A DNA stretch of 64,000 nucleotides, from NCBI GenBank assembly GCA_943704425.1, contig CALSCP010002362.1:21053-85052 (forward strand), given 5' to 3'. A model generated the notes under the pieces. That model saw only the letters and a list, made by a program, of their open reading frames with translations. It was not told where the DNA came from and ran no database searches. This DNA comes from Ministeria vibrans ATCC 50519 (lineage: Eukaryota > Protista > Filasterea). The position numbers and the translations under genes were made by a program. Positions 7,869-51,259 of this stretch are shown piece after piece. Position 1 is the stretch's first letter. Every line of letters starts with the position of its first letter.

Positions 7869-9968
7869 TCAACAAACTTCAAGAGAGCCATAACCGGTGA
7901 TGGTTGTTGTCCCGGCTGTGGCAGCTTGGAGGCTTGTTTGGAGAGACTGGCACAGGGCCAAGCGAGTGTTGCCCGTGATGCTTGTGGTGGTGCCGATGGA
8001 CGTCACGGAGGAAAGGAAGTTGATGGAGACGAGCGCCGTGTCCTGGATCTGGAGGCTGTTGTCGATTGTTTGGAGGTTGTTGAATCCCTGAACACTGGTC
8101 AGAGCAGGAAAGTTGTTCAGGCGCAGAGAATGGGCACGCGAGAGGGAGGCGAAACCGGAAAAGGAGGTCAGTGATTGGATGAGAGTGAGTCGCAGTTCAC
8201 CGTCAGTGACTCGAGTGAGGTTGTTGAACGAGAGAGACGAGAACGATGTAAAAGAACTGGCGAGACCACCTGATATGGTGAAGGAGGAAGTTTGAGTGAG
8301 GGCAGGGAATGAGAGAGTGGTGAGATCACGCATTGAACCGTCCCCAGTCGCAGAAATAGAAAAGGAGGAAGTCTGAGTGAGGGCGGGGAATGACATGGAC
8401 GTGAGAAAACGCATTCCGTCATGCGCAGAGGCAGAAATAGAAAAGGAGGAAGTTTGAGTGAGGGCGGGGAATGACATCGAAGTGAGACGATACATTCCCT
8501 GATGCGCAGACGCAGAAAGAGAAAAGGAGGAAGTTTGAGTGAGGGCGGGAAATGACATGGAAGTGAGACCATGCATTCCGCCGGTATTTATAGACGCAGA
8601 AATAGAAAAGGAGGAAGTTTGAGTGAGGGCGGGGAATGACATGGACGTGAGAACACGCATTCCGTAATGCGCAGAGGCAGAAATAGAAAAGGAGGAAGTC
8701 TGAGAGAGGGCGGGGAATGACATGGAAGTGAGACCAATCATTCCGCTAGCTTCAGACGCAGAAATAGAAAACCCTGAAACCGTCTCCAACAACGGAAACG
8801 AAATTGTAGTCAAAAGTCCCATTTTCTGCGGCCCATCAGCAATACTGAAATCGCCGCCAACTTGAGTCAAGTTTGCCAATCCAAGAGATGTGATAGCAGT
8901 CATGCTTTTCACATCAAGCGCACCTCCAAGGGAACTCACGCCAAGTTCGTCCAGGCTCTGCAAACTACGGCAATCGTCCAGAACAAAGTCTCCGCCAATC
9001 ACAATCACCTTCTCCAGTCCCGCAAAGTCAGTCAGACCATCCATATTGGTCATTTCAAAGTTATTGGTGACGTGGGTCAGGTTCATAGAGCCAAAAGAAG
9101 TCATGCCCAAAGCAGAGAAGCCCCGCAAAGTGCCGTTGATTTGAGTCACATTGCCCATAAAGTCGCTGAGCACAATGAAGTCAACAATGCCTGAAAGAAC
9201 CACGTCGCCCGCGATAAAGTCGCACTCCTTGAGGCGCTCAAGGGATGAAGCTGAGGTAAAGACGCCGCCGGGGCAAACATTCGTGAGACATTGCTCTGTG
9301 TTACACGTGGTAGTGTCGACCAGTGACGGACAAGCGGCGCCACCATTCTGGGGATGCGTCAGAATGCTACGAAAGCGAAACTGCTCACCGCCGCCACAGC
9401 TGGCCGAGCATGAGCTCCAGTTTCCAGGAAGACCAAGAACGCAGTCCACTGGACATCCGTGTGTGTTGCAAGAGCGCATGTCCACTAGATTCACGGAGGC
9501 GTTGCATGATAGGCCGGGTATGTCGACGGTGACATTGCGGGAGCGGTTCTGTGTACCACCGTCGCAAAGGACCGAACAAAGCGAGTAATCCGAGTATTCA
9601 GAGTACTCGCAGGTGCCGGGAGTTGGCGCCGGTGGTGTTGAAGTTGTGTTGGTCGTGTTCAGACCAGCATGGTCAAGTAGCAGAGCGGTCGTGAAGGAGA
9701 GACTCGTCAGGCTGCGGCGCAGCTCTGTGTTCTCCGCGCGCAGAGTCGCGACATCTGATTGCAGCGTGGCAATCGCGGCAATTGCAGCATGCAAATTTGT
9801 CTCCGTGGCGCCGTCCTTGAGCATGATAGTGCCGCCCGTCGCCGCCTGGAGTACGAGGTCGTTGTTGATATCGCCGACGTACGACACCCCGATTGCTTCC
9901 GCTGGCAAGTCGATGGCGCACACCTTGCCGACGAGCAACAAAACGCACGGCACGATAGTAAGAAGCAT
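7869..9968 (-). CDS. Secreted protein: signal peptide, cubilin-N-like/coiled coil, 2x TSP1, receptor-L-domain/LRR-like solenoid (intronless, paralogue A)
   Basis: 699-aa ORF; MLLTIVPCVLLLVGKVCA signal; heptads IATLQSDVATLRAENTELRRSL; CSVLCDGGTQNRSR and WSSCSASCGGGEQFRFR; LKECDFIAGDVVL L-domain entry; 27-aa repeats LTSMSFPALTQTSSFSISA; no TM. Confidence 0.88.
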   Translation of the reverse strand: MLLTIVPCVLLLVGKVCAIDLPAEAIGVSYVGDINNDLVLQAATGGTIMLKDGATETNLHAAIAAIATLQSDVATLRAENTELRRSLTSLSFTTALLLDHAGLNTTNTTSTPPAPTPGTCEYSEYSDYSLCSVLCDGGTQNRSRNVTVDIPGLSCNASVNLVDMRSCNTHGCPVDCVLGLPGNWSSCSASCGGGEQFRFRSILTHPQNGGAACPSLVDTTTCNTEQCLTNVCPGGVFTSASSLERLKECDFIAGDVVLSGIVDFIVLSDFMGNVTQINGTLRGFSALGMTSFGSMNLTHVTNNFEMTNMDGLTDFAGLEKVIVIGGDFVLDDCRSLQSLDELGVSSLGGALDVKSMTAITSLGLANLTQVGGDFSIADGPQKMGLLTTISFPLLETVSGFSISASEASGMIGLTSMSFPALSQTSSFSISASAHYGMRVLTSMSFPALTQTSSFSISASINTGGMHGLTSMSFPALTQTSSFSLSASAHQGMYRLTSMSFPALTQTSSFSISASAHDGMRFLTSMSFPALTQTSSFSISATGDGSMRDLTTLSFPALTQTSSFTISGGLASSFTSFSSLSFNNLTRVTDGELRLTLIQSLTSFSGFASLSRAHSLRLNNFPALTSVQGFNNLQTIDNSLQIQDTALVSINFLSSVTSIGTTTSITGNTRLALCQSLQTSLQAATAGTTTITGYGSLEVC
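8270..8790 (-). repeat. Coding tandem repeat, 81-84 bp unit, ~6 copies with variable segment
   Basis: Near-identical blocks gaaaaggaggaagt(t/c)tgagtgagggcggggaatgacat at 81-84 bp spacing separated by divergent segments. Confidence 0.9.
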
Positions 9969-11916
9969 GATTCCCCTACTACAAGCAAATCATGAGAGAG
10001 AGCCACAAGTTGCGAAACAAAAATCAACAGCGCCTTCTCACACACCCGCTAGTTCGAAACGGTCTCAAATTATACTAGCAATGATGGGCCACAGACTTGA
10101 ATAGTTTACAAACAAAGGAAAGAGGGAAGAAAGGTTGGGATCAAGTGAGGTGACAAGCAAGAAGGCTGAAGAAGAAAACTCGGTCCCATTGAACCTACCG
10201 CACTTCAACAAGTGCCACTGTCCACTGACCACATATGAGACATACCCCAAGCAGAAGCGATGAATGAACGTAGAATTCCAGGCGGCACGAACGAAATGGA
10301 GAAAAGCAGAATGGAAGCAGAATGTCGAAAAGTCGCAAGACGTCGCCTCCGCCTGGCAAAAGGCTATTTTCGCATTCGCCCGCCACCAACGCGTCACGCG
10401 AGGTTGAGGGATTGGTCGCGTCCTTGAATGAGCGCACATCTTTTGACGAAAGTTGCGTTTTCAGCATAAAGGAAGGAATAAAACCCATCCCCAGCAACTG
10501 ACGACCACCATCGTCAAAGTCAGAGATACACACACCCGTCACTTACAACAGTGGGTGGGGCGGAAGCGGTTTACTTGTGCAGAATTTGCAGAATTCACAG
10601 ACGACGATTCTTTCAGCTTTATCAAAAAACAAGCGAGAGTCGCTCCCAAACAAAATCCTAAGCCTCCGGGACAAGTCGCACGCCACCATTGTAACACAAA
10701 CACTATATACAAGCCCCGGCGCCATGCGGCATCGTTATTAGATGGTCGTGAATGTATTGTCGTTTCAGTTTGGCGACACCAGAGCGAAAAATTCATTCGA
10801 ACAACTTCAGCGAGTCAGGGAGCAATACGGACAAGCTGAACAATGACATGTACGCTTTGGGCTTACTGTGTGTGATAGAGTCCGCGCAGGTTCTTCAAAC
10901 GTCCAGAGTTGATGAAAAAAGGAGACTCCCCAAGCCCAGAGCAGTTGATATTTTTTACGATTCTAGCCAGGCCGCACTCTTTTTTCACCCCTCCCAATCT
11001 TCTCAGCGTGCTTCACTGTCTCACTGAAGGTAGGCGGATGTTGTGAGCGTGTGAGAGAGAGAGAATCGGGGGGTTGAAGTTTTTTTTGTTGCGATTTGAA
11101 AACCTCCGCTGGAGCGGTTCCTCTGTCCTCAGTTTTGCAACATATGTTATATCTATCAGTGTGGAGGTGAACCTGTCGGGTTTTGGAAGCAGCGAGGCTT
11201 GTAGTGGAGCGAAAAGTTTCACACGGTTTTTTGAAGTTTTTTTTCCTTGCTTGTGCTTGTCTTTGGACAGACTGTGTGCTCAGTGTGTGGGGTTGGGAGA
11301 GCGGAATCTAACACTCAACCCAATGTTTTTTGTGTGTGGTGGTCTTTTCGAGTGGACCTGACAAAAAGCCAAAGAAGGTCCTTCGACAAAGATTTTATTG
11401 AAAAACTTGCTTACATACCGTCGCTGTGTGACTTTTTATTTGTTTGGCACTCGTTTTCTTGTTTGTCGAAATACGCTAAAGTAACAGCGAACTCAATTTT
11501 CGTTTTTTCCCAAGGTTGAGTTATTCCGTAACGCATTCGTTGAGGCTGGATAACAAAAATTCATCAAAAATGCCCCGATTCGCATGTACTTCTGGTAAGA
11601 GTTGGCGGAGGGTTCAGTTAAGATTTCGATATATACTGTTGGCTCGTACCAGGCGTTGTGTGGTGGACAAAGGGGATCCCTGTCACATTCCCTGCGTCGA
11701 TCGGTTGTCTCTGGTTCCAATATTGGCTGTTCTTTCTTTGTTGTGTCCTATTTGATACAGTCTTTCCCTGTGGGGTAAACGCCAAAGACATTGTACAGGG
11801 GTCTTCTCGCCCAGTTCTTGGTACCTGGGTCTTGCGCGCGAATTTGTGACTTGTTGTTGAATCTGCAAGAGTTTTCCCCTGCTTACACTCTCTGTAATCA
11901 CGTAGCGAACTTTGTC

Positions 11917-14172
11917 ATGGTCGCGACTCTCCTGTTTGCGGCGACCGCGACCGCCGACAGCGACAAAGCCTTCATCGCGACTGTTGACGGGAATCTGCAG
12001 CTCAGTGCGGCACCGAACCGCTCCGTCATCGTCGAAGGTGTTGGCGACCTGGCGGCGAACCTGACGACACTGCATGTCGGTAACGAGGAGCTGCGCACAG
12101 CCAACGACGAGCTCCGCGCAATGCTGCATGCGGTGGAGGTGAATCTGACGCAAGTCACATCTCTTATCTCTACCGTGGCGACGCTTGTGGTGGACGTCAC
12201 GGAACTGCGCGCAGAGAACACAGAATTGCGCGCAGAGAACACCGAGCTCCGTCGCAGCCTGACGAGTCTCTCGTTCACTACCACCCTGCTGCTCGACCAT
12301 GTCGGACTGAACACGACCAATACGACTACACCACCGGCGCCAACTCCCGGCACTTGCGCGTATTCTGAGTACTCGGACTATTCTCTCTGCTCCGCCCTCT
12401 GTGACGGCGGTACGCAGGGCCGCTCCCGCAATGTGACCGTCGACATTCCCGGCTTGTCGTGCAATGGTACCGCCAATCTGGTGGATACTCGCTCTTGTAA
12501 TACACACGCATGCGCGGTGGACTGTGTGCTTGGTGCCCCCGGCAACTGGAGCGAATGCTCGGCGACGTGTGGCGGCGGACAAAAATTTCGCTTCCGCCCC
12601 ATTCTCATGCATCCCCAGAACGGTGGCGTCGCCTGTCCGTCTCTGGTTGACACGACCTCGTGCAACACACAAGTTTGCCTGACCACCATCTGCCCCGGCG
12701 GCGTCTTCACGACAGCATCTTCTCTCCAACGTCTCAAGGAGTGTGACTTTATCGCCGGCGACGTAGTTCTCTCTGGCATGGTTGATGTGATTGTCCTCAG
12801 TGACTTTATGGGCAATGTCACGCAAATTAACGGGACGCTCCGTGGATTCTCGGCGGTGGGTATCACATCATTTGGCTTGATGAACCTGACCCACATCACC
12901 AGCAACTTTGAGATGATTAATATGGACGGTCTCACTGACTTTGCAGGACTAGAGAAAGTGGTGGTGATTGGTGGAGATTTTATCTTGGATGACTGTCGCT
13001 CTTTGGTTAATATCACCGGCCTTGGAGTGACATCTATTGGAGGCAAGTTGGATGTAAAAAACATGCCGGCGATGACCACACTTGGACTGGCGAATCTGAC
13101 GGAGATCGCCGGTGACTTTACGCTCTCGGACGGGCCACAAAAAATGGAACTTCTTGTGTCCATTGCTTTCAGCCGGCTGAGCACGACCTCGGGCTTTTCT
13201 ATAACTATTTCGTTCACGCGTGGAATGGAGTTGCTCGCAGTCATGTCGTTCCCTGCCCTCACTTCGACTTCGTCCTTTACCATTAATGTGGGGGGTTCAG
13301 GACTATATGTACTTACAACCATTTCTTTCCCCGTTCTCATGTCAACGTCGGCCTTCATTATTTATGCTGGAAGTTCAGGAATGGCGGATCTCACAACCAT
13401 CTCGTTCCCTGACCTCGTGTCAACGTCATCCTTTTCCATTTCTACCAGTTCAGGAGGAATGGCACAACTCACAACCATGTCGTTCCCTGTCCTCATGTCA
13501 ACGTCATCCTTTTCCATCTCCTCCACGCATATTGGCGGAATGCAGCGACTCGCAACAATATCTTTCCCTGCTCTCTCATCAACGTCGTCATTTTCCATTT
13601 CCGCGGGGGAAACTACCTCAATGATGGTTCTCACAACCATCTCGTTTCCTGTTCTAACGTCAACATCGACTTTTTCCATTTCTGCGACCGTAAGTTCTAG
13701 TATGCCAGCTCTCTCAACCCTATATTTCCCTGCCCTCTCATCAGCTGCATCCTTCTCCATTGCTTCTTCTGCAACTGCCCCCGTTTTCCCTTCCCTTCTA
13801 AGCCTTTTTTCATTCAACAATCTCACACGGGTGTCCGACGGACAACTTTTTCTCTCTCGATGCGATTCTCTCACTTCCATTTCCGGCTTTACGTCACTCT
13901 CACGCGCCCATTCGCTCCGAATGGAATATCTCCCTGCCCTGACCACCATCCAAGCACTCACCTCTCTGCAAACAATCGACAACAGTCTGATTGTTCAAAA
14001 CACCGCCCTTGCCTCGGTCGACTTTCTCTCCTCTGTGACATCTATCGGCACGACCACATCGATCACGAGCAACTCTCGATTGGCTCTGTGTCAGTCGCTG
14101 CAGTCGAGCCTCCAAAGTGCGACCGCCGGGACGACGACCATCAGTGGCTACGGCTCTCTTGATGCGTGCTAG
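11917..14172 (+). CDS. Secreted protein, paralogue B of 7869-9968 (divergent orientation; 5' end uncertain)
   Basis: Same architecture, near-identical TSP1, L-domain entry and C-terminal cap (RLALCQSLQSSLQSATAGTTTISGYGSLDAC); longer coiled coil; repeats LTTISFPVLxSTSSFSI. Confidence 0.88.
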   Translation: MVATLLFAATATADSDKAFIATVDGNLQLSAAPNRSVIVEGVGDLAANLTTLHVGNEELRTANDELRAMLHAVEVNLTQVTSLISTVATLVVDVTELRAENTELRAENTELRRSLTSLSFTTTLLLDHVGLNTTNTTTPPAPTPGTCAYSEYSDYSLCSALCDGGTQGRSRNVTVDIPGLSCNGTANLVDTRSCNTHACAVDCVLGAPGNWSECSATCGGGQKFRFRPILMHPQNGGVACPSLVDTTSCNTQVCLTTICPGGVFTTASSLQRLKECDFIAGDVVLSGMVDVIVLSDFMGNVTQINGTLRGFSAVGITSFGLMNLTHITSNFEMINMDGLTDFAGLEKVVVIGGDFILDDCRSLVNITGLGVTSIGGKLDVKNMPAMTTLGLANLTEIAGDFTLSDGPQKMELLVSIAFSRLSTTSGFSITISFTRGMELLAVMSFPALTSTSSFTINVGGSGLYVLTTISFPVLMSTSAFIIYAGSSGMADLTTISFPDLVSTSSFSISTSSGGMAQLTTMSFPVLMSTSSFSISSTHIGGMQRLATISFPALSSTSSFSISAGETTSMMVLTTISFPVLTSTSTFSISATVSSSMPALSTLYFPALSSAASFSIASSATAPVFPSLLSLFSFNNLTRVSDGQLFLSRCDSLTSISGFTSLSRAHSLRMEYLPALTTIQALTSLQTIDNSLIVQNTALASVDFLSSVTSIGTTTSITSNSRLALCQSLQSSLQSATAGTTTISGYGSLDAC

Positions 14173-14480
14173 GGATTATGGGGTTTATTAAAGTTTTCGA
14201 GTCGTTTTCTGCGTTTAGTCAAGGTAGTGTCGACATGCGGCAATGTTGATGTTGTCAAAACAGCAGTGGTCGTAGGTGACGATGAAGTTGTTCTTCTTCT
14301 TGTGTGTGTGGACAGGGATCGCAAGAAGAAGAGAGGGCGAGTATGGCGTTGGGGTAAGGTCGAGTTGGTGCCGGAATCGAAAGTGAGGTCTAGAGCCGGA
14401 ATAGTTGCGAGTATACGAAGCAGAAAAATTACCCACTCCTGTGCTTCAAAAGATCGTATTGGTGTAATCTAATAAAATTA

Positions 14481-14675
14481 CTACACCTTCATTGCCCCCC
14501 TCTTCGTTCCTTCCACCCCTAAAGTAGGTCTCTGCTCAAACTCGAGCAGCTCAACGCCGAGATCACGAATATTCGCGCTTGGGATCAACGCACTCAATCT
14601 TTCCTCAAGAACCGCAAACGAGGGCCGATCTGCCGCTTCTCCACTCCAGCACGTTATCAAAATCAAAAACACATT
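14481..14675 (-). other. Duplicated terminal kinase exon (alternative last exon or relic)
   Basis: NVFLILITCWSGEAADRPSFAVLEERLSAL...AMKV* parallels the real last exon 14981-15172; intact tctgcag acceptor in the same phase. Confidence 0.75.
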
Positions 14676-14980
14676 CTGCAGACAAGTCAATAAATGTCAG
14701 CCACAACAATCAACAACAACAGTCAATCAATGTCAGCCACAACAATCAAAACACTACCAAACACTGATTTTTGGACACCCAGGTGGCAAGCAGTGGGAAG
14801 ACGCCTTATCTGCTTTGTGATATACTTTAACGAGTAGGAAAAGAGTTTTCAACAAAATACAGCGCAAAGAAAGGGGATAATTCTTAGACTAAAGCAGACC
14901 AACAGCAACCAATAATACCTCATGAAACCCATCAAACCCGGTTCTGATCTTTAACAAAATTCCATCAAGGGACCTTTTAC

Positions 14981-17900
14981 TCACACCTTAACAACCCCTT
15001 TTGTGGCATCCACACCCAACACCGCCCGCTGCTCAAACTGCAGCAACTCAGCGCCAAGGTCGCGGGCACTAGCACGTGTGATCAGCGCAGATAAGCGTTC
15101 CTCAAGAGCCACAAACGAGGGCCGCTCTGCCGCCTCTGCACTCCAGCACGCTTTCAAAATTGAAAACACGTTCTGTAGAGACGAGTTGAACGTACACTTG
15201 TCAGCTAAAAAAAATTTCAACAACAACATTAACACTGACCTTCGGACATCCAGGCGGCAGCTCAAGCCTGCGACCGGTTTGCACAAACGGTACAATGCCG
15301 TTGATAGGCACATCGCGGTACGGCCGGACCTTGCCAAACGTGAACAGCTCCCACACAAGGACACCAAATGACCACTACATACAGTGTTACACTCAAGACA
15401 CCTGCTACCGTGCCATCACTTACCACATCACTCTTCTCAAGCAGGAACACCGCCTCCGTCAGCGCCTCCACTGGCATCCAGCGCATTGGCAGCTGACTCC
15501 CGTGCGGAATCTTGTAGCGGTCGTGACCTCGCTCAAGGCGCACCGCCAAGCCAAAGTCGCTCACCTTGACCACATTCTGTGCATATACAAGGCAGTTGCG
15601 CGCCGCAAGGTCGCAGTGCAGCACACCATTCTCCGCAAGAAAGCCCATGGCCGACGCCACCTGCACAGCCACGCCAATCAATTCCATAGGCGACACCTCA
15701 AGACGGTGGCGTTGCTTAAAGAGGCGCCGCACAAAGTTGCGCAGGTCACCGTACATGGCCAGCTCGGTCACAAGAAGCCACGGTTCGCGGTCCATGCATA
15801 CACCGGCCAGTTTGACAATACCCGCGTGTTTCGCACCCACATCCGCCAGTAGCTGTGCCTCGCGCACAAAATCGTCACGATCGCGCTGAGACGCATTCGC
15901 ATTGAGTGTCTTCACCGCGACAAGCTCTTCCTTCGTCGACGCAAGAATGACAAACCCAAAATTGCCTTTGCCGATCTCCTCCTCAAACTCCAGGCGCGAA
16001 CGGTCAAACTACAAAGATTAGCACAAATTCTTAATCATAACTCTTCTTCCCTCCCATCCAATGAAAATTACCTGACTTTCCACCATGAGTGCATTCATGT
16101 CGTGGCGCTCGTCATCGTACTCGCCCTCGTCATCGGCGACCTCGACAAGCTTGGGCATTGCTTCAAACACAGCCTTGTGCCGCTGGTGTTCCTGCGCCAG
16201 ACTCGCTCGTGTCTTCGTCTTGAGCGACAGCGACTGGACAATCAACAAGACACGCTCTGACTGCTGCGCCATCGCTACACCATCCTCCTCGAAAGCACCA
16301 CCGCCCTCCTCCATATCCTCCACGCGGTTACCGTACACAGTATCGCCATCGACGGGCTCTTCGCGATTCCCATATTCGGCGACCAACGACGCCGGTAGGT
16401 AGCCAGTTCCGTCACTGTTGCCGTACAGGGTTCCTTGGTAATCGCTGCCAGTCGCGTTGGAGTACCCTGCGCCCATGTAGCCGTAGCCCTCATGCTCATC
16501 GTCCTCGTCCTCGTCCTTGTCAACCAGACCGTAGTCGTTTTCGCCGCCGGCCACTAAGGAATGGAGATCGCCCTCCTCAGCGGCATCCTGGCTAGGCTCG
16601 CGCATACTCATTGTCTCTGCGAAACTGAGTAGTTGAATGGAGCGCTTTCGCCCAAGCAAGTCTGGATGCACAGAGGCAGAAGCGGACGATGCCTTTGGCT
16701 GCAGGCCAGCATGCATGCCACCCTCAACAGTCATGTCGTCGCATGCTTCGACGGAGTCTGGAATTCCCGACGCGCGCCCGCCGCCCTCGGACCACTCGTT
16801 GCTGTGACTGAAGCGCTGTCGCACATGAGCGATCGCATTCTTCCACTCGCGGCGCGGTCGTCCACTCAGGATGAAGAGAACCGCCAATAAGGCACCCTGT
16901 AGCGTGTTGAAGATCACAAACAAGTACCACAGGGCCACCTGCTGCGCTGCAATTGCCACTATAAATAAGGAAAGAATTAGAGAGAAAAGCGGTTTATTCG
17001 ATGTCACAGTATGATAATAGAAGCGACATTCTCATTACGTGGTGTGAAAAAAAACGTGACAAACTTACCGTAGGCAAAGATCCAGGTGAGACCAAGACAC
17101 GCGACAATGCCAAAGAAAACGCGCACCCTCGACTTGTCACTGGCGGCCTTGTCAGTAGCACGCGAGGTGCGAGCCAGATGATAGAAGACCGCAACCGTCA
17201 CAATCAGGTTGTACACGAGTACGCCGGCGATAGGAACAAGAAAGCCAATGATCAGTCCCCACTTGGAGTGAATCCAACAGTGATTCTCGCCGCCAAACTG
17301 AACACCGCCCTGGGTGGCCACATCGACAAGGGTAATCACGAGGGTAGCGACCGCTGCGCTGGCCCAGCCAACGATGAAGTAGAAGCGCAACGAGCGGCCC
17401 TGACCAAACACCTTGACAAGCAGAAAGTACAGGTTGTGCGCAATGCATGCCATCCATATGAATGAGGCCATGAGAGCAAAGTACAGGAGTATGCCGACAG
17501 CGCGACAGACTGACGTGTTCTGAGTCTTGGTGATGCCGGCGAGAAAAATCAAGTTGACGGCAAACAGCGCCACTGCCAGGTTTGCAATCATGGCAATGGG
17601 CTGCGTGCGGATCTTCTTGAGCAGCGCGTACGAGAGAACAATAAACAAACTTGCCACCATTGACAGTACGCATCCCAGGTAAGTGAGCACCGAGAGAGCG
17701 CGTGCGTCTGTCTCGCTCAACTGGGTCGCAAGTGGCGAGTTCCAGCCGGCGAGAATGGCAAACGAGGTCATATAGTGGCAGCGACGACAGCGGACAAGCG
17801 CCTGTGAATCAAGCTGCTTGCAGCGGCAGACTGTCTTGGTCGCGTGGCGCGTGTGTGCACGGCAGAGAGACGAAGACCACTGGCGCTTCCAGCGATCCCA

Positions 17901-20900
17901 CTGGACACAGAGACGATCGTCGGAAAACGACTCGTTGCGATGTTGCAGCGTTACGTCAATGGCGACTTCGTCGGGCAGATCCGTGACAGTGAGGTTCCCA
18001 AGCGAGAAGCCCACAATGTTGGAGTCGACCTTGTCAGACTGTGTGTCGTCCGTCGAGACAAACGGGTTCGAGTGGCTAACGAGAAAGCGCGACGACAAAC
18101 AGCTTTCGTTGAGACCGAGGTGAGCAACAAAACCACGCGGCACAACAAGTGTCTCGTTCAGACCCGTGTACGAACTTTCCACAAGCGAAGCGTTTTGGCG
18201 ACGCGCAAATTGAGCAGCCAAGCGACCTTGGACCGTGAACTGCGAGCTTCTGTCGCAGGAGACACGCGATGACGCCGCCCCAACAAATTGGTCAATGAGT
18301 TCGGGCGCGGCGCTGCTCTGGTTCGACTGGCGCAGTGTGTTGAGGGCCGAGGGCTCAAGTAGATTGCTCAGCACCGCAAAGGACGATGTCAGGGCACCAG
18401 TCGCCAGGTCCGCCTGTTCTCCACTGCTGGTGTCATTGCCCACGAGCGAATCGAGGACAGAGCCAAGCATTGACACGATGGTGTTGGCAGATGAGGCGGT
18501 GTGGTTGGTGTCGTCGAGCCAAGTGTTGTTATTGGTGAGTTGTAGAAGGGGGATGGTGGCTGCGGCTGCGGCTGCGACCGAACCGCTTGTGGTGGTTTTA
18601 TGCAGAGTGAGGGCAGTGAGAAGACACGTGACGGGAGCACTGCCACCGGATCCGGCCGTGTCGACAGTGCCCGCAGTGAAGGCAGCGGGGTTGATAAAGG
18701 CGGACACGCACAACTGGGGATTGTTGCCGAGTCGCGCGTCGCCAGTGATGTTCTGCAGACGAGCGAGGTCAAGTGCAATCAGACTCGGGAGCGATTCGGC
18801 AATAAGGGAGCCGTCAATATGCGCGAGGTGGGGCATGATCAAGTCGACAACGCGCGTCGCCGGTGAGTCGACAACACGGATATCACCGCGTACGCGACGC
18901 AACAAAGGCACTTGAACTGACTCGACTGACGTGGTGTTGATCGTGAGAGGGCCGTACAGATCACCGAGCGTGGCCAAGGGTGCGACCGAGCGCACATCCA
19001 CTCCAGAAAGATGAAGCCCTCCAAAAATGTGCGAGCAGCCAGCGTAGGCGTCGACACGCGCTTGTGAGGTGACAACTGTCTCGACGCGGCAGTCGCTTTG
19101 ACACTGGGGCCCCACAACCTCGGCGATACAGGTGCAGTTGTAGCGGTTCGTGTTCGCGTCGTCTTCGGCACAAGTGCCATCGTTCTCACAGGGTGACGAT
19201 GCGCACTCGTCAATGTTCGACTCGCACTGGGCGCCGGTGAAGCCCGGAGAGCACACGCAAGAGAAGGCGTCAAGAGCATTCACACATGTGCCGGCATTGA
19301 TGCATGGTGACGAGGAGCACTCATCGACTGCGAGTAGAGCCAGCTGTGCCGATGAAGCAGCGGTGGAGCCACACGAGCTGGTTGAGGAGAGAGGAACGCA
19401 GGTGCTGAGGCGACGACGGCCCGTGCTCAGTGGGCTCTCGGCCAGTGTCCAGGTGGACGGACTGTCAAGCGGCGCGGCGACATATACGAGACCATCGACA
19501 GTAGTTGCGTTTGCGTCGCGCGCAATGTGGATTTCGACAGCGCGCGCAAAGTCGGAGCCATTGAGCGACGGCACCCACAAGGAGTACACAATCTGCTGTG
19601 CCTTGACGGCGTTTGAGGGGAGTGTGGGTACTGCCAAGGCCGCCACAATGTCAGCAAGGACAACAGTTCCGTTCGCTGTGATGGCGTTTGCTGGTATGAT
19701 GACGGCGAGAGCGCCAAACGAAAGGGTTCCGCCTGCAGGCCCAACGATGGTGCCGGTCTGTTCGCAAGCGGCACCAACATAGTTCGCGGCGCACACACAC
19801 GTCGTACTGTTGATACCGTCAACACATGTGGCCCCGTTGGCACACGTGCTGGATGCACACTCATCAATGTTCGACTCGCACGCGATGCCTGTGAAACCGG
19901 CCAGACATGGGATTTTCACGCCACAAGTGGGACCCGTATAGAGGGTATTGCAGGTGCACAAAAACCCAGCCACGCTGTCTGTGCACGAACCGCCGTTTGA
20001 ACACGGCGACGAAGCACACTCGTCAACGTTGACATCGCACAATGTACCAGTCCAGCTCGAGTCGCATGTGCACGAGAAGGCGGAGTGGGTATCGACACAA
20101 ACAGCGCCGTTATGGCAAGGCGACGAAGCACACTCGTTGATGGCGTCATCGCAAAACTGACCGGTGAATCCTGGCGCACAGAAACACATAGTGCTGTTGG
20201 CGGCACAGGTTCCATCGTTTGCGCACGGTGTAGTGGTACAGTTGGTGGCGCAGGGGCTCGCATCGAGAATAATGATAATGTCGTCGGCAAAGCTGAGCAA
20301 TGCGTTGAGACCAAACTCGATGCGTTCGAACGACGCGGTTTGTTGTAGCACTGACTCAGCAGTGTAGTCGACGAGGGCGCCCGAGCAAGGGAGTGATTGG
20401 TGAAGCCAGTTTGTCGGGTCGAGGAAAACCCCGTTGCCAGCCGTGTTGGTGAAGACAGCGAGGGCGCTGTCGCAGGAAGTTCCGGTCCGCGTCGTCGGGC
20501 ACGCACAGATGTACGAAGACAGAGAAGCAATGCAAGTGCCACCGTTTGCGCACGGGGACGAGGCGCACGGGTCTGTGCATGTGTGGTTCGAGCTGCGAAA
20601 AATGGGCAAATTGAGTATCTGGGTTGAGCTTCGGTCTAAGAGATCGAAAATGGTGGCATTGAATTCTCTTATTGACTTACGCATGGGTACTGAACAGAAT
20701 GCCAGTATTGGGCTCAAAAGTCGCGTACGTATCCGTTGTAAGGGCCATTCCCGAAGCTGTCGCAGATGCCCTCAGAGAAACCGCCGCCGAAGAGGCGACA
20801 ACGACCAAGTCTCCGGAGCATGGGATCGCTCCTGCGTTCCAGTTGGCACTCACATCCCAAAATCTCGAGGAGTTGCTCGAAAAGAGTCGAGTGTCGGCTC

Positions 20901-20964
20901 TTACGGGCACGAGCAGGCAGAGGAGAAACAGGGCAACTGAAGTCGTGAGTTTGGGAGACAACAT
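14981..20964 (-). CDS. Adhesion GPCR-tyrosine kinase fusion receptor (AMN-like x2, EGF repeats, ZU5-like, receptor L domain, GAIN/GPS, 7TM, Tyr-rich linker, TK)
   Basis: Exons ~20964-20681, 20592-17069, 16958-16072, 16008-~15424, ~15363-15240, 15172-14981 joined by GT-AG introns (first three junctions checked in frame); signal peptide; NIDECASSPCxNGGTC EGFs; IVGPAGGTL..IIPANAI; CVQWD..WSSSLC..TSFAIL; family-B 7TM (TYLGCVLS, WMACIAHNLY, CWI, LGLTWIF, FNTLQG); kinase IGKGNFG, VAVKTL, HCDLAARNCLV, DFGLA, LPMRWMPVE. Confidence 0.88.
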
Positions 20965-21392
20965 ACCCGCCTGGTCCAGGGCAAGCGTGTCAGGTAACGT
21001 AAATGTGCGGTTTAGCCTCCCCTTTAAGGCCTGGCTTGTTGTTTGAGGCACGCTGAAGATAGTCGGATGGATAGAGAAAGAGAGAAAGAGAGACGAGAGT
21101 CAGTTTCGACAAATTTCCGCTTCAACATAGCTACGGCCGTGAGACACGATTCCGGTCATAACAGACAATTTCAACATTAATAAACAGACGAATAACAACC
21201 CCGTACACCAATAACATGACCAGATGGAGTGGAAATGGTACAGAATTTCCACGCGGCATGAAAGAACCACCTCGAAAAGAACGCCACAAAAAAAAAAAAA
21301 AAAAAAAAAACGTTTCAGCTTGTAAGACATTGCTTCTGCAGTAAAAGTACAAGAGGGGATGTGTGTATTGTAGTATGTAGACAAGCAGCGTC

Positions 21393-21863: not shown

Positions 21864-22659
21864 ATGTCTGAAGGACGCGAAATCAACTTGGCAACGCTGC
21901 CGTTGCCGCAGATGCAGCAGCTTCAACAGCAATTTCAACAGGTTTGCACATCTCTCTCTCTATCTCTCTCTCTCGCGCGCGCTCTCTCTCTCTCTCGCCC
22001 AGGCCCATCTACACCATCATCAAATGAACATGCTACTTACGGCGCTCTGCTGCTGGCTCTCTGTAGGAGATTGAGTATTTGACGCAGTCCTTTCGCCAAT
22101 TGAAAAAGGCGGAAGCGAAATTCGGCGGCGCCCAAAAGTCCATTGCGTCGTGCAAGACGAGTGAAGTGGGCCACGAGGTTCTTGTACCCCTTTCAAGTGC
22201 CGTACGAAGCTCCTCAAAATGTCCCTTTCGATCAACCAACACATTTTCGTCTTCTTTCTCTCCTACTCGCGCAGGTGTACGTCAAAGGGTCTCTTGACGC
22301 TCCCCAGACCTTCCTCGTGGACATTGGTACCGGGTATTTTGTCGAGAAGAACGCCGAAGACGCCGACAACTACTACAAGCGAAAGGAGGTATCACACGAG
22401 TTTTATTGATTGTTACTTTTCACTTCTTCTTTCCTAATCCGCTTTGTGTTTGCAGGAGTCTGTCCAAGCAAGCTCTAAGAATGTTGAGGGGATCATTGTG
22501 GAGAAACAGAAGAACCTGCAAGGTGAGCGCAACAGCAGAGCTAGAGAGAACACTGACACGAATGATCTTGTGCACGTCTTAGTGGTGACGGATGTGCTGC
22601 GCCAACGGATGGCAATGCAGCAGCAGATGCAACAACAGCAGGCTGCAGCAGCGAAATAA
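21864..22659 (+). CDS. PFDN5: Prefoldin subunit 5 (alpha type; multi-exon)
   Basis: INLATLPLPQMQQLQQQFQQ|EIEYLTQSFRQLK, EVLVPLSS|VYVKGSL..FLVDIGTGYFVEKNAEDADNYYKRK. Confidence 0.93.
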
Positions 22660-22713
22660 GGAGAGGGACCAGCGGCTCTGCTCTTTTGTGTATGAATTCT
22701 TCTCTTTGTGTGT

Positions 22714-23860
22714 TTACAATTTCTTTCCTTGAACTCGAAAGTCAAACGAGTGAGTCCCATCGCTCTCGACGGACGCGTACAAGCGCGTGCCTTGTCGAAC
22801 ATACTCGCAGGTGAGGGGAAACCAAGCGTTGACGGTGGATGTTTGGTTGTGCCAGTCGTTGTGAGCGAGACGGGCAAGTCGGTTGACGGACGCCTGCACG
22901 TGAAAGGTGGCGCTGTTGGCCGAGCGAGAGGAGCCCTTGGGGTAGAGCGAGAAGGTGAAGTTGCCATCGTAGGGCGCCGTTGTCACGTAGTCAGTGTATT
23001 GAAAGGCTGTTGTGGAGCCCACTTCAGGAATATCTGCAAAATATATAAACAAAACGCGTAAGTTGATTACGCACCTAAATTGGTGCATAGCAACAGATAC
23101 CGTCGTCAACTTTGAGCTCCGTGGGTGGCGCTGGGGGCACGGAGCGTGAAGTGGCACTGATGGAGTACGATTCGCTGTCGCCAATGCCCTGAACGCCCAC
23201 GTAGAAGGTGGCGTTGGCGTCGGGACCAGCATGGTCAATGTGCACGACGGACGGGTAGCCCGTGATCGCACCCATGGACCAGTCGGACACGCCGTCGACC
23301 GGTCGGTACCCAAGCCCCACCCATGTCCACGCGCCGTACTGACTCCCGCCTAAACGGTGTGTGTGTGTGAGAGAGAGAGTGAGAGAGAGAGAGGAGGGAG
23401 AAAGAAACAAAGTGATAGATAGATAGATAGGAGGGAGAGAAACAAAGTGATAGATAGTTAGAGAGAGAGAGAAACAAAGTGATAGATAGAGAGAGAGAGA
23501 GAAAACCAAAGTGATAGAGAGATAGAGAGAGAGAGAGAGAGGAGGGAGAAAGAAACAAAGAGAGAGAGAAGAAAGAGAGAGACAATTGACAGTTGACTTT
23601 TTGTTGTACCTGTGATTGTGGTCGTAATGTCAATATTGAGCCATGAGCTTACATTGAAATAGTAGTAGTTGTACTGCAAGGGGCATACACAAATGAGGTC
23701 CAAACGCTGAAATGAGAGCAAATTCAAAGTGTACCGCATTGAATTTGACGGATCCCGTCAACACACTGCCGTCGAGCGGAAGGAGCGTTGTATCGTCACC
23801 GCGACAGGGCGATAGGATTGCAAGGGTGGAAACAAGGAGTATCAAGCAAAAGGAGTTCAT
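22714..23860 (-). CDS. Secreted hypothetical protein with beta-sandwich-like domains (multi-exon)
   Basis: Signal peptide MNSFCLILLVSTLAILSPCRG; YNYYYFNV, ATFYVGVQG..YSISAT, RLYASVES resemble PPC-like modules. Confidence 0.6.
23365..23582. repeat. Intronic (AG)n microsatellite interspersed with GAAACAAAGTGATAGA motif
   Basis: Direct reading. Confidence 0.9.
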
Positions 23861-23897
23861 GCTTTATATATAAAAAAGTGGTGTATTTGGAGAGTGA

Positions 23898-25274
23898 TCA
23901 ACTGTTACAACTCCACTTTGAGTCTTCAGTGTAACACACAATGTACGCGCCCCAGGATCCAATGGGCTGCCCAAAGTGGGATACGCAGTTACAGTGCGAG
24001 GCGTTGTCGTTGAAGGTGATTGGGCGCGGAATGGAAAGAGGATAGCAGGCGGGCTGTGTCCAGTTGCCCAGGGGTAGACCAGTGTCGGCGGAGAAGGCGT
24101 ACTCGGTGAACCAGCTTTCGCTGGTTGACGAGAAGGTGTTGGTGACGAGTAGGTTGGAGTCGCCCATGAGGTTGAGAAAGGGCTGGCGTCCGCCGCACGG
24201 GACTGCCTTGGACGTGCGGTAGAGCTGCTCGCCCGTCGTCGTGTTCCAAGCGAGCAGCGTGCAGTCAAAGTAGTAGGGCATGGCAAGAGTGTCGGGTGCG
24301 GTGAATTGCAAAGGAGCGTAGCTGCCACTGCTAGAGAAGCTGGGGAGCGCGAGCGAGCGGGGCAGACGCTCACCCGTGTCACTGGCAAATAGCGTAATGT
24401 AGTTTGTCCGTCCCGATCCCGAAGGCGTAGTGATAGCCAGGAGGGTGTCGGAGACGATGGAGAAGACGGAACAAGGACTCGCGCGTGGCTGAGTGTAGTT
24501 GCTGGCCCAACGAGGGGCACCCGAGGTCAGGTCGAAGGAGAGAAGCTGTCGGTACGACATGGCATGGAGACCGTCGGGGTTGGTCGCTAGCCAAAATACG
24601 TAGTCGTCAACGGGAGTTTCCCATCGCTGGACGCCTGTCAGGCTGTCAAAGGCGACAATGGACGACGAGAAGACTCCCCAGACACTCTGGTTGGTGACCT
24701 TTGCGCCGTACACAGTGCTGCCGTCGGGCGAGAGTGCGATCGGGAAGGGCCCACAGTTGACGAGTGACGGCCAAGGGATGAGCAATGGCTGGGTCCACAG
24801 CAAATGGCCTGTTGCCACATCGAGCGCGTTGACGCCGATGGTGAAATTCGACGACGAGTACGCCAGAGTTGTCGTCGTCAGCACAATCTTATCGGACACC
24901 AGCAGAAACGCACGCGTCGCCGTGCTGCCATCTTCCGGTACCCATCGCCACTGAAGCTCGCCAGAGTCCAGGTTGAGAGCAAGCACGGTGGGATTGGACA
25001 GGCCGTTGGAGTCGACGGTCGCGGTTGCGGATGAGTTGTCAAAGTAGAAGTACAGACTGGTTGCGTCTGCCGCCATTGTCGTGCCACCGGGCGCGTTCTC
25101 TTGCTTGGGCGTCTGGAACTGGTAGGCAAACCCCCCATTGGCAGGACACCCACGTGGCGCTTGGCCTGTGCCCAGCGGTCCGGTAGGTGTCGGCCAGGGA
25201 AGTGACGCGTGCGCGAGGGTGAGAAGCACCGATGTCACCAGCACAGACAGCGCAGGAGAAGTGCAGCCATTCAT
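23898..25274 (-). CDS. Secreted PQQ-like/BamB-type beta-propeller protein (intronless)
   Basis: Signal peptide; blades ALNLDSGELQWRW, ALDVATGHLLWT, AFDSLTGVQRWE, SFDLTSGAPRWA, AWNTTTGEQLY, AFSADTGLPLGNW. Confidence 0.8.
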   Translation of the reverse strand: MNGCTSPALSVLVTSVLLTLAHASLPWPTPTGPLGTGQAPRGCPANGGFAYQFQTPKQENAPGGTTMAADATSLYFYFDNSSATATVDSNGLSNPTVLALNLDSGELQWRWVPEDGSTATRAFLLVSDKIVLTTTTLAYSSSNFTIGVNALDVATGHLLWTQPLLIPWPSLVNCGPFPIALSPDGSTVYGAKVTNQSVWGVFSSSIVAFDSLTGVQRWETPVDDYVFWLATNPDGLHAMSYRQLLSFDLTSGAPRWASNYTQPRASPCSVFSIVSDTLLAITTPSGSGRTNYITLFASDTGERLPRSLALPSFSSSGSYAPLQFTAPDTLAMPYYFDCTLLAWNTTTGEQLYRTSKAVPCGGRQPFLNLMGDSNLLVTNTFSSTSESWFTEYAFSADTGLPLGNWTQPACYPLSIPRPITFNDNASHCNCVSHFGQPIGSWGAYIVCYTEDSKWSCNS

Positions 25275-25429
25275 ACTGCGAGTGTGTGTTGTGTAATGTA
25301 GCAGGAGTGGGTAGGGAGGCTGTCAGACTCACGTCAGACTTGAGAGGGAGTGAAATGAAATAATATGATTTCAGAATTCTCAATTCAGATAATCAGATTT
25401 AGTCAAACAACAAATTTTATCATTCCGCT

Positions 25430-27984
<2,555 letters not shown>

Positions 27985-28067
27985 AGAATATACTCATCGC
28001 CACTTTGGACACGATCATGTGAAAAGAACAAAAAGAAAACAAGTTTTGCATTGGGTTGTTTGCGCCT

Positions 28068-29943
28068 TTACTTCTTGACAGCGCCACCAGTCGTACCCAG
28101 ACCACACACGGTCTTGAACGAATCCTAAAAGAGAAGAACCATCCAGTCAGAGACCGCGAGAGAGAGAGAGTGAGAGAAAGAAAGGAAAAGGAAGGAGAAG
28201 GAAGGGAGAAAGGAACAAAGTGATAGAGAGAGAGAGAGTGTGTGTGTGCGTATAAAATTCAATTGTCATTTCGTACGTAGATGTACCACTGAAGACCAGT
28301 GAGCGTTCCGATCATGATGATGCGTGTGCCCAGACCCGCTGTCATGAGGTTCTTCATGCCAATCTCGCCTGCGATCTGGCCAAAGCTCTTGCCCTGGTTC
28401 GCTGGCTTGCCAATTTGCGACACAAGGTTGTCGGCAGGGTGCGAAATGATGGCACAGCCCACGCCGGCAATGTAGCCTGACAGGAAGGTGATGCCCAGCT
28501 GCGTGCTCTTCGAGTACGAGTCCTTGGGCTGCGTGAACACGTTACCGTAGAGCGTCTCGACGACCGCCTGGAACAGCGCAAATTTGGCCATGGTGTAAGG
28601 GATTTGCCTGCTCCAGAGGGGCACGAGCGAGCCAAAGGGGAAGCGCGTCTCGACCTTCTTGGCCGACATCATCGCCAGAGCGGGGCCCAACGATGTGGGC
28701 CACGCGCCCGTCGGCGAAGTCTGCACCTTCACCTTGACCATCTCCATGGGGCACAGTGCAATGTCAGCGAAGAACTGAAAAGAAAAAAAAAGGGGGGGTC
28801 ACGTTTTAGTCTTGGATTATTTTTATACTATCATAAAAAAACAACACACACCTCGGCGCTGGCACTGGCCGCGAGCCAGATGATGGCACGGTACTTGGTG
28901 GCGTTCTCCTCGCCAGCCATGTTGGCGTAGACGTCTTTGAAGACCTCGTAGAAGCCAAACTTGAAGAATCCCTGCATCGAGTAACCTACATAAAGTGAGA
29001 CAGAAGGAAGACATCCGCTTAGTAAATGTACGCACACACAACATCAACAACAAAGTGCATTTCAGTGTGTACCGATGAGAGTGGGAGCCCATCCCTTGAC
29101 GAGGTTGGCAACGCCACCCTCGGACGAAATGACGCGCAGAGAGCTGAGCAGACCCTTGTACTTGCCGGGGTCAGTCTACAGGGAAGAGAAAAAAAAAAAA
29201 AGGTCAATGTCATCCCAAATTGTCGGTCAAATTCTCAAGGGATCGCTGAAGGAAACGGGTGGGGAACACTCACTCACTCACCTGCATGTTGCACTTGGCC
29301 ACATCAAGAGGGGTGACAGCCTAGAAGGTGGACAGAGACAGTTAATATGATGTTTGTTGAGTCAGAGCGACACACAACCGTATGAGAAGAGAGAGTATGA
29401 TAGCACTTTCTATGACTTACGGTGTGTGTGAGGCCGCACGAGAGAATGCCGCCCAGCATACACTTCATGTAGTAGTCGGTGGTGTGGGGAATGGGGCCGG
29501 CGAAGCGCGAGTCCCATTTGGGCTCTACAGAAAGAAGAGATTGAGATTTTTTTGCATTGTCGTCGTCAAACGTCAAGCGCGACTGGCTTTGAGTGAATCC
29601 GCACTGGGGATCATACAAAACGGTGTAGTCTTAATCGTATGGGCTGCAAATGCTTGTAAATAGAAAGCGCGACATTTGTCAACGAGACATGAAACGGTTT
29701 TTTTTTTTTTTCAGGACACATTCGATGCACGTGGAAAAGCAAGATGGAGCGTCGTGCGTGTGCCCATACGCGGCTACACTCTGGCGACCGTCTGGCTAGT
29801 CCCCTTGGCGCAATGTCTGCGTGCATACCGGCGGCGGAAGGGACGTTGATGGGACGGCTCGACGGAGCCGCGTTGGCGACGGCGACGTTCGAGCGGACCA
29901 GCGAGGGCATGCCAAAGGGGTTAGAAGAGGCCAGAGAAAGCAT
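28068..29943 (-). CDS. SLC25A3: Mitochondrial phosphate carrier (multi-exon)
   Basis: GGILSCGLTHT, VTPLDVAKCNMQ, GYSMQGFFKFGFYEVFK, ADIALCPMEMVKVKVQT, LVPLWSRQIPYTMAKF, GLGTRIIMIGTLTGLQWYIY. Confidence 0.95.
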
Positions 29944-29962
29944 CTTGTCAATATTTTCAAAA

Positions 29963-30397
29963 ATGTGTCGAATAAATTTGATAATTGATTTTTGTAATTT
30001 TGTTGCCTTACTTGTGACGAGTGCGTTCGCTCGCACGACTCGACTGCTCATCGTTGGCGTAAATGACGGTGGTCCTTCCGGCCTTGCGACGGCGTTTCAC
30101 TTGACAAACCAGCAGTCGACTTCTTTTGAGGTTGAAGTGGCGACAGTCGGGTGGAGGTTGGGCGGCAAATGTCACACCGGTCGAAACGACACAAGTGGCT
30201 TTGGTATGCGAATTGAAGAACACGGTCTACATGCCACGTTTGGTTGGTACGACAACACATTTGATATGCTTCGACAAGTGTACCATGAAGCGCCGTGGCC
30301 CTCCACTACCTACCCTTTGACGAATTTGAGCATGGCAATGCGGGAGAATCGTGCATTCTTGAAGTATTCCCAAGAAAAAAGAAATACAACCCATTAA
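29963..30397 (+). pseudogene. Truncated flavin/NAD(P)-binding oxidoreductase (phytoene-desaturase/amine-oxidase-like N-terminus)
   Basis: LLIVG(VND)GGPSGLATAFHLT, GWRLGGKC, RIEEHGLHATFGWYDNTFDML; only the N-terminal ~145 aa, ends at AT-rich repeat; Gly motif interrupted. Confidence 0.65.
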
Positions 30398-32097
30398 TGA
30401 TACAGTCACCACGCGAAGACACAGCCAGACCGCCTTGCAAACTCGACCGAAACTCTAGAGGTAACATGGGAGAACAGTGGCAGGTCATAGTGCTGTGTCG
30501 ACGCTATAACCAGTGAGGCAATCGCAATGGTACGTCATACAGTGGAGGCTTCAGAAAAAAGAAATAGAAGAAATTAATTTGAAAAAAGAAATAATAATAA
30601 TAATAATAATAAAATAATAATAATTAAAATTTTCATTATTGTAAAAGTACAACTCTCGATTCTCTATTAATTATTTTCCTATTGTAAAATTAATAATTAT
30701 TATAAAATTAAGAAGAAGAATACAACCCATTTATTAATGAGCATACAGTCATTAATAATAACAACAAAATACAAAATAACAAAATCAAACCAACTATTAC
30801 AAATTAAAGGAAAGGGGTACGGGGAAAAGCTTGGTTTCCCCCTATTACAAATCAGAGAAAAGGGGTTACTAGGTTGTCCAATTAAAAAAAGAAAAAAAAC
30901 TATTATACAGCGTTACTAAATACTTTAACTTTACTGTTATTCTACTACCTATACTCTAAAGAGGTTACTAAAGTGGTTACTAAAGGTTACTCAGGTTACT
31001 AAAGTATCAGGAAATCCACCAGAATACATAGCTCCCATACTGCCTCCGTTTTCTTTGCGACCCAAACTTTTGCAACTTACTCCTTTGTATATAGTTTTAT
31101 TATGCGTTCCATGTTCTTTATTATTAATTGAAACATAAAATCCAATAACATTTGTTATTACCGCTAATTGGCAACTCTGATGAACCCATGTTGCCATATC
31201 GTCGAAGTCGGAAACAACTCCGACCAAGCGTGGGACAAGCAGGACTGTCCAGTTGAGTGGAAATGCTAAAGAAACCAGCGTTTGGGGTGTCGTCATCCGA
31301 GTGGAGAAGGGTACATCGCCCTGAAACCGAATTAGTCAGATCAAATACCAGTTCCTTGACTCCAAATGAATAGCACAGCATCCTGTCAATGCTACATTCA
31401 TCGCTAGATGGAGCAATACCAATGGAGGCATTCGAGAGGAACATCGACTCTTGAACAAGTGGCGAAGGACCATAGTAAATTCGGTTGCCATTTGAGCAAA
31501 AACGGTACATCGACCTCCAGTCTTTGCCAAGCTTTTCTTCCTCAAGTTGCTGCACTTTGGCAGTCAGTGACCCCACAGTTTGAGTCAGACTCTCCATTTG
31601 AGCCAAGATATCCGTGCTGTTGACAAAAACACTGCCGTTTTCCGCAGGAGAAATAACGACGTTGCCATCGACGTTCTCAATAGTTGCAACCTCGGAGGCA
31701 TCACTACTCAGACACATGACGCCCAAGAACAGGGCGGAAATCACAAGAACCTGAGCGTAGGACGGATTCTCGGTTATTTCTGCTCCACTGACTGATTTCT
31801 CGGAGATTTCTCACCTTGAAATGCATAGTGACGACTACTCCGTACTTCGTACGGAGTACGTGGTAGGCGGTGGTACGTTCGACAAGGCAGAAATAACGTT
31901 GTACTCTTAGGGAGAGCAAATTATCTGTTATTCAACACCTGATTTTACAGTACTCCTCGTAATGAATTAACAATTATTATTGATTCAACAATAATAATTA
32001 TTATTAGAAGAAGAATACATCCCATTTATTCATGATACAGTCACCAGATCTACAACAAAAGCACAAGTGCAATCGCTATCCAGTGAGGTAATCGCAA
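30381..32097 (+). repeat. Dispersed direct repeats flanking the 31124-31826 gene
   Basis: aataca(a/t)cccatt...atacagtca at ~30381, ~30718, ~32013; gctat..ccagtgagg(c/t)aatcgcaat at ~30502 and ~32075. Confidence 0.7.
31124..31826 (-). CDS. Small secreted protein with cubilin-N-like/coiled-coil N-terminus and Cys-rich C-terminal domain (2 exons)
   Basis: MHFK|VLVISALFLGVMCLSSDA via gtgaga..ctcag intron; IENVDGNVVISPAENGSVFVNSTDILAQMESLTQTVGSLTAKVQQLEEE. Confidence 0.8.

Positions 32098-51213: not shown

Positions 51214-51259
<46 letters not shown>

Follow-up and report, generated by a model that had tools for sequence, protein, structure and literature searches.

We describe a locus in a 64,000-nucleotide (nt) stretch of the genome of Ministeria vibrans ATCC 50519 (contig CALSCP010002362.1, positions 21,053 to 85,052; hereafter the window, within which all coordinates are given unless another contig is named), where a receptor gene lies among genes for secreted proteins. 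The receptor has a seven-transmembrane (7TM) domain and a tyrosine kinase encoded in one mRNA, and is thus a fusion of G-protein-coupled receptor and tyrosine kinase (GPCR-TK). Its N-terminal tip bears two modules that may be of the kind found in amnionless (AMN), and three of the secreted products share an N-terminal segment, here called the leader, whose predicted fold is closest to the N-terminus of cubilin. Cubilin, whose N-terminus forms trimers, and AMN, which anchors it in the membrane, together make up the animal CUBAM complex, and the best explanation we can offer, with a probability of about 0.4, is that the leaders are cubilin-type heads and the receptor tips amnionless-type modules, which would permit end-to-end tethering of the secreted proteins.

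The receptor gene was delimited by spliced RNA contigs, by exon phases and by Pfam searches carried out exon by exon. Its parts are as follows.

14981-20964, minus strand: receptor gene.
20681-20964, 17069-20592, 16072-16958, 15424-16008, 15240-15374 and 14981-15172, minus strand: its six exons.
20593-20680, 16959-17068, 16009-16071, 15375-15423 and 15173-15239: its five introns.
20681-20895, minus strand: AMN-like module 1 (residues 24-95), which follows the signal peptide immediately and extends to the donor site of exon 1.
20244-20468, minus strand: AMN-like module 2, about 75 residues, between EGF domains.
17069-17702, minus strand: secretin/adhesion-type 7TM domain, helices 1-6 (Pfam 7tm_2, E 6.2e-29).
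14981-16008, minus strand: tyrosine kinase domain in the last three exons (PK_Tyr_Ser-Thr, E 1.4e-41), with splice joints in three runs.

When public contigs were compared with window positions 15050-21049 (6,000 letters), the gene proved to be covered, with all five introns removed, by one transcript contig of 5,751 nt in one run and one of 5,721 nt in another; a third run lacked the three 3' introns, and a DNA-type run showed the unspliced form. Every intron reads CT..AC on the plus strand, that is GT..AG on the strand of the gene, and the exon phases preserve one open frame throughout. The product runs in the order signal peptide, module 1, EGF domain, module 2, many EGF repeats (Pfam EGF, E 1.5e-34), GPS-like motif, 7TM domain (helix 7 being encoded in the following exon), Tyr-rich linker and tyrosine kinase. 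These observations confirm the original prediction, made from the DNA letters, that 14981-20964 encodes a single membrane receptor with 7TM and kinase parts. The string CHYMTSFAIL, which directly adjoins the 7TM domain on its upstream side, is GPS-like at the level of the motif only, and no Pfam GPS match was obtained in the receptor at E values up to 0.1. RNA-type contigs labelled as another organism also match window positions 15050-21049, mostly at 95-99% identity, which means that this spliced receptor is also expressed in a closely related strain or species. Algal-culture and seawater metagenome runs contain small shares of the words of this locus. Directly downstream of the receptor lies a diverged second copy of its last kinase exon (14481-14690 against 15029-15179, 79% identity over 151 nt).

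GPCR-TK fusions, in which a 7TM domain and a C-terminal tyrosine kinase likewise occupy one protein, have been reported in choanoflagellates and sponges but in no other holozoans, and no member has been characterised functionally (PMC12716839). Unlike the fusions described in that work, the M. vibrans receptor is of the secretin/adhesion type and carries EGF repeats and a GPS-like motif. Nor is it an AMN orthologue: it lacks the body of AMN (Cys-rich region, SEA domain, single transmembrane segment and FXNPXF motifs), no NPxF/Y motif was present in any of its exons, and only its end modules resemble parts of CUBAM.

The case for an AMN-like tip starts from module 1, which is 72 residues long and runs straight into an EGF domain. 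This module matches the Pfam Amnionless family (PF14828) with an E value of 1.9e-4 and 20.8 bits, its residues 13-68 lying on profile positions 10-67, which are the region of beta-helix 1. Amnionless is the sole Pfam family that it matches below E 0.2, covering 56 of its 72 residues; a very weak match to T6SS_Vgr stands at E 0.21. Human AMN (6gje_A) is also its top match among PDB sequences (E 0.6), and is again the top match (E 0.029) for a profile of five modules. Modules 1 and 2 resemble each other (BLASTP E 2e-4) and have the motif F..D..NW....PCSG.L in common, and module 2 gave no Pfam Amnionless match of its own. A hidden Markov model (HMM) search of 1.84 billion representatives with a two-module profile returned eleven weak matches, mostly repeats and bacterial beta-helix proteins, and no eukaryotic orthologue; G8 was matched by no module at E values up to 10. 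The receptor had been predicted to start with two AMN-like modules, and two related modules are indeed present, their likeness to AMN being sub-threshold both in Pfam (E 1.9e-4) and in the PDB profile search (E 0.029). On balance we put the receptor modules slightly on the side of being AMN-like.

Genome searches covered the organism's own 29.7-Mb assembly of 2,860 contigs. In the first of them AMN-like modules appeared to be unique to this receptor, a view overturned when a DNA pattern search for NW-x(4-6)-PC-x-G revealed modules beyond it. There are at least three further places outside the receptor gene, and about seven modules were detected in all. Two of the additional genes can be outlined.

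Contig C1708, 5830-15942, minus strand: giant open reading frame (ORF) with EGF and Sushi-like repeats, a single transmembrane segment and a tyrosine kinase, read across an assembly gap.
Contig C1426, 910-5406, minus strand: ORF of about 1,500 residues that opens with a DSL-like Cys-rich part and contains one AMN-like module.

In the ORF on C1708 the AMN-like modules number three or more, with Sushi-like sequence after each of them; there are in addition dozens of EGF repeats, a cupredoxin-like insert, one transmembrane helix and a Tyr-rich tail, and the W..NW motif occurs also at its start, after the signal peptide. One of its modules scores 10.7 bits against Pfam Amnionless, for which the curated cut-off is 30.4 bits, and a near-identical copy of the ORF is found on contig C1664 around 71020-71265. 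In the C1426 ORF the module is a QW....VPC variant, accompanied by many EGF repeats and two cupredoxin-like inserts. The occurrence of predicted AMN-like modules in a giant single-pass receptor tyrosine kinase (RTK) and in another EGF-rich protein is new here. Elsewhere in the genome there is a weak match to positions 325-442 of the AMN profile (E 0.03).

The candidate partners of the receptor are encoded by three genes, two on its downstream side and one beyond its upstream end.

7869-9968, minus strand: gene A, complete ORF with signal peptide, leader, coiled coil, two TSP1 domains and LRR/receptor-L-like repeats (LRR, leucine-rich repeat).
9669-9914, minus strand: leader of gene A, of the short subtype and more diverged than the other two.
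11917-14172, plus strand: gene B, complete ORF, a paralogue of gene A placed head to head with it and of the same architecture.
11956-12201, plus strand: leader of gene B, short subtype.
31124-31826, minus strand: gene C, with a 4-codon first exon (31815-31826), a predicted intron (31751-31814) and then the codons for the remaining signal peptide, leader, short coiled coil and payload.
31505-31699, minus strand: leader of gene C, short subtype.

Genes A and B are 80% identical over 758 nt by blastn, and neither product has a transmembrane segment. The intron of gene C, predicted from the DNA sequence, is 64 nt long with GT..AG ends and follows the fourth codon; the payload beyond it is small, contains Cys residues, has no Pfam match and bears no relation to that of A and B. 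Gene C falls within the most AT-rich 2-kb bin of the window (30001-32000), with a G+C content of 0.41 against about 0.52 elsewhere. In all three products the leader stands directly after the signal peptide and consists of a hydrophobic residue, N, DGN, three hydrophobics, PA, N.SV.V, G and a heptad-like helix. The leader of gene A matches a three-sequence profile, which was built from it too, with an E value of 2.1e-34. With the same profile 30 genomic places are recovered (best E 2.9e-39), and with a profile of twelve sequences 62, of which 47 are at E < 1e-3; from these counts the likeness of the leaders of A, B and C is judged to be far beyond chance, and the leader to head a predicted family of at least about 50 genes. 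The original prediction that three secreted neighbours without a transmembrane segment share an N-terminal segment and a coiled coil is thereby borne out. It had also given them different payload domains, which is correct for gene C and incorrect for A and B, since these carry the same TSP1 and LRR/receptor-L-like payload.

In each of the 23 copies inspected the leader motif begins no more than about 10 residues from a hydrophobic stretch like that of a signal peptide. Position 3 is hydrophobic in 20 of the 23, N stands at position 5 and D-G-N at positions 7-9, the GN pair being nearly invariant, and the positions after DGN are occupied by three hydrophobics, P-A, N.SV.V and G. Thereafter a long subtype has a further strand (..LYVNG..VAT), and a short subtype, to which A, B and C belong, enters the helix at once. 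The payloads of the paralogues comprise TSP1 with LRR, EGF repeats, EPTP repeats (E 8.5e-19) and several sequences with no Pfam match; in several paralogues the coiled coil is followed by EGF repeats, and one, which weakly matches a Gp53-like tail-fibre C-terminus, has a collagen-like Gly-X-Y run, as would suit a trimer. A fibrinogen-like look of two payloads was not confirmed by Pfam. Outside the genome few relatives of the leader came to light. Pfam returned nothing specific for the 23 leaders, a word-indexed search of public protein collections found one relative only, which is metagenomic (P0021), the ESM Atlas offered no useful neighbour, and scans of metagenome contigs with the leader and module profiles gave no match.

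Part of the receptor region appears to exist in a second, telomere-capped copy. On contig C2427, positions 1-700, TTAGGG-type telomere repeats pass without a gap into a copy, 90% identical, of the upstream region and first ~22 codons of the receptor (window 20900-21299), and further along the contig are a fragment like the 3' end of gene A (89% identity to window 7847-8096) and another leader gene (2542-3132, minus strand). The start of C2427 has the appearance of a duplicate that was truncated and then healed through the addition of a telomere, and this telomere-capped partial duplicate suggests that the receptor region is dynamic.

Evidence on the fold of the leader comes from structure prediction. 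An AlphaFold2 (AF2) model of a long-subtype sequence, computed as a monomer from an alignment of 23 paralogues, has a mean predicted local distance difference test (pLDDT) score of 81.6, rising to about 90 in the first 60 residues, and shows a hairpin (residues 2-13), an extended stretch and a helix (36-58). In a Foldseek search of 350,542 PDB chains the model placed cubilin chains of 6GJE at rank 1 (6gje_C) and rank 3 (6gje_B), with E values of 1.9 to 2.9. VIA-align, run on 48,161 representative chains, put 6gje_B first with Z 4.1, the next best having Z 2.9 at 11 Å root mean square deviation (rmsd), and aligned 71 of 76 residues so that model residues 1-72 lie on cubilin 42-121, a match that spans the entire module. 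In this register leader G8-N9 fall on cubilin G49-N50, and I3, at the conserved hydrophobic position 3, comes near cubilin Met44. Met44 is the hydrophobic centre of the face with which cubilin docks on AMN (PMC6283879). As 6GJE was not released until December 2018, later than the AF2 training cut-off, the model is unlikely to reproduce an entry seen in training. The claim that the segment is like the cubilin N-terminus was to be checked by Foldseek, among other means, and in part stands: cubilin ranks first in two fold searches, and profile searches found no match to it. By structure the answer leans weakly towards yes, and a cubilin-like fold is both the best available reading of the leader and, in our estimate, a probable one.

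No CUB match was obtained in any product scanned with Pfam, and genes A, B and C are not cubilins. The arrangement nevertheless resembles CUBAM (PDB 6GJE; PMC6283879) in several respects. The leader stands at the mature N-terminus and is predicted to form a hairpin, beta-helix strands and a coiled coil; some of its paralogues continue into EGF repeats, as cubilin does; its best structural match is cubilin 42-121, and the best sequence match of the receptor tip is AMN beta-helix 1; and candidate partner genes whose products lack a transmembrane segment adjoin a gene for a membrane protein. It departs from CUBAM in lacking CUB domains in the products scanned here, in having on the membrane side a 7TM-tyrosine-kinase receptor or a single-pass RTK rather than an endocytic adaptor, and in setting about 50 or more leader genes with many payloads against one or two cubilins.

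Other systems share parts of the design. Collectins, ficolins and other trimeric soluble recognition proteins also combine an N-terminal oligomerising segment, a coiled-coil or collagen neck and variable heads in a diversified family, as the leader proteins would if they are trimers; unlike them, the leader proteins would have an oligomerising head of the beta-helix-strand type, and Pfam confirmed no C-type lectin or fibrinogen domain in them. The spike tips of phages and of the type VI secretion system (T6SS), in which the VgrG/gp5 beta-helix bears a PAAR cap, offer a likeness in that three intertwined chains form a beta-helix whose end is stacked on a pyramid-shaped cap, an analogy already noted for CUBAM (PMC6283879). 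Here, in contrast, the proteins are eukaryotic and secreted with a coiled coil, and there is no significant sequence relation. Finally, the receptor modules begin with a core motif like the starter W..NW...P..GD.V of G8 and bacterial beta-helix proteins, from which the modules differ in a length of about 70-80 residues and in a PC.G variant as in AMN.

If these likenesses are followed, a mechanism can be proposed. The leader would be an oligomerisation head of the cubilin type, with a strand or hairpin at its N-terminus, then two or three beta-helix strands and a coiled coil; it would bundle three copies of a variable payload. The receptor tip modules would be small right-handed beta-helix modules of the amnionless beta-helix-1 type, and the open N-terminal face of a leader trimer might stack end to end on the open base of such a module, as in animal CUBAM, so that recognition trimers lacking a transmembrane segment become tethered to signalling receptors. 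Load on a tethered ligand could then expose the tethered agonist of the adhesion-type GPCR and activate the 7TM domain and the kinase. Gene order offers some encouragement, in that leader loci occur twice independently (as the A/B pair and as C) in the 24 kb around the receptor, against an expectation of about 0.04 (P ~0.001 for at least two). Also in favour are the presence in one genome of apparent counterparts to both members of an obligate animal pair, and the direct passage of module 1 into an EGF domain, no capping helices of the kind that AMN beta-helix 2 has being apparent. We had earlier pictured one receptor with exchangeable ligands, which proved too narrow given at least about 50 leader genes and AMN-like modules at at least three further places, including a single-pass RTK. 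The wider proposal is of a relative of the CUBAM plug and socket outside animals, expanded to combinatorial surface recognition, with dozens of different trimers docking on GPCR-TK or giant RTKs as exchangeable ligand-binding subunits; taken whole, this is unlikely. That at least some leaders dock on AMN-like modules is an attractive idea, only marginally easier to credit and less likely than not, and docking of A, B or C on this very receptor is distinctly improbable.

A number of observations weigh against a cubilin-amnionless pair. On the side of the receptor, the 20.8 bits of module 1 fall below the curated Pfam cut-off of 30.4 bits, and its AF2 model, computed from a two-sequence alignment, has a pLDDT of 39 and is unusable. 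The start W..NW...P..GD.V is present also in bacterial beta-helix proteins, some with G8, so the core of the motif is, as far as sequence comparison goes, generic, and one bacterial protein of the type IX secretion system (T9SS) exceeds the Amnionless cut-off on profile positions 7-35 alone. The tie of the receptor modules to AMN thus comes down to the PC.G variant and the longer alignment, and is plausible but weak. On the side of the leader, searches of PDB sequences with the leader profiles and the N-terminus of gene B gave coiled-coil and chance matches only, cubilin (6GJE) being absent up to E 10; the fold searches scored low for what is a small, non-globular chain (E 1.9; TM-score 0.34; rmsd 5.8 Å); and the sequence modelled is of the long subtype, whereas A, B and C belong to the short one, without one strand. 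As to the pairing, the leader genes, about 50 or more, outnumber the roughly seven modules detected; on C1708 and C1426 the modules lie inside the protein, flanked by EGF and Sushi-like sequence, and not at a free N-terminus; and no leader gene accompanies the other AMN-module genes on their contigs, where only about 0.3 would be expected. A genome-wide count and linkage of both modules had been proposed as a check; the count was obtained for both, and linkage was found at this locus only.

Most of these last points would be accommodated by an alternative, which we regard as quite possible if short of probable, namely that the leader only trimerises. Whether cubilin-like or not, it would then oligomerise secreted matrix- or lectin-like proteins in the manner of collectin, ficolin or tenascin heads, the receptor tips would be ordinary beta-helix ectodomain modules that bind other ligands, and the cluster would be a fast-evolving, partly subtelomeric assemblage of genes for surface and secreted proteins and not a functional pair. 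A large dispersed leader family (62 places) beside few AMN-like modules, the other module genes unlinked to leader genes, the internal position of the C1708 and C1426 modules, the telomere-capped partial duplicate of the locus and the nature of A and B as plain tandem paralogues are all as this alternative would have them. It sits less easily with the two independent leader loci so near the receptor, with the presence of apparent counterparts to both halves of a known obligate pair in one genome, and with the behaviour of the fold itself, an open-ended intertwined beta-helix being aggregation-prone unless capped (PMC6283879) and no capping helices being apparent after module 1. A chance or convergent resemblance, with the leader some other fibre-like trimer of the phage-tail-fibre or YadA type and the modules a bacterial or G8 beta-helix start, has on its side that all sequence evidence for CUBAM likeness is sub-threshold, that tail-fibre and YadA-stalk clusters appear, with low scores, among the language-model neighbours of the leader, that one paralogue has the Gp53-like match and that bacterial proteins matched by the module profile carry G8, but we think it improbable because cubilin came first in two structure aligners among tens to hundreds of thousands of chains in a register that agrees with the GN motif, Amnionless is top in both Pfam and PDB sequence searches and strengthens with a larger profile, no module matches G8, and the PC.G variant is common to modules and AMN.

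Beta-helix-on-beta-helix anchoring of the CUBAM kind is known from animals only ("insects to man") and only as an endocytic device (PMC6283879), and our literature search yielded no paper linking cubilin or amnionless to unicellular relatives of animals. If the two module families of M. vibrans do correspond to the parts of CUBAM, such an architecture would predate animals or exist outside them, would have served to fix diversified soluble recognition trimers on signalling receptors, and would supply the uncharacterised GPCR-kinase fusions with a concrete and testable ligand hypothesis. The conservative part, some 50 or more predicted secreted proteins built on one probably cubilin-like oligomerising leader, would be useful for the annotation of protist secretomes in any event.

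The window as a whole has a G+C content of about 52% and is eukaryotic DNA. Comparison of the window with itself reveals a tandem array at 43954-44786, with a period of about 59 nt and copies that are 92-99% alike. A further ORF of 1,301 residues (49611-53516, minus strand) combines a RING domain, a CEP104-like TOG domain and a kinase, and the best named relatives of the kinase part are animal MAP3K1-like proteins, at 42-43% identity.

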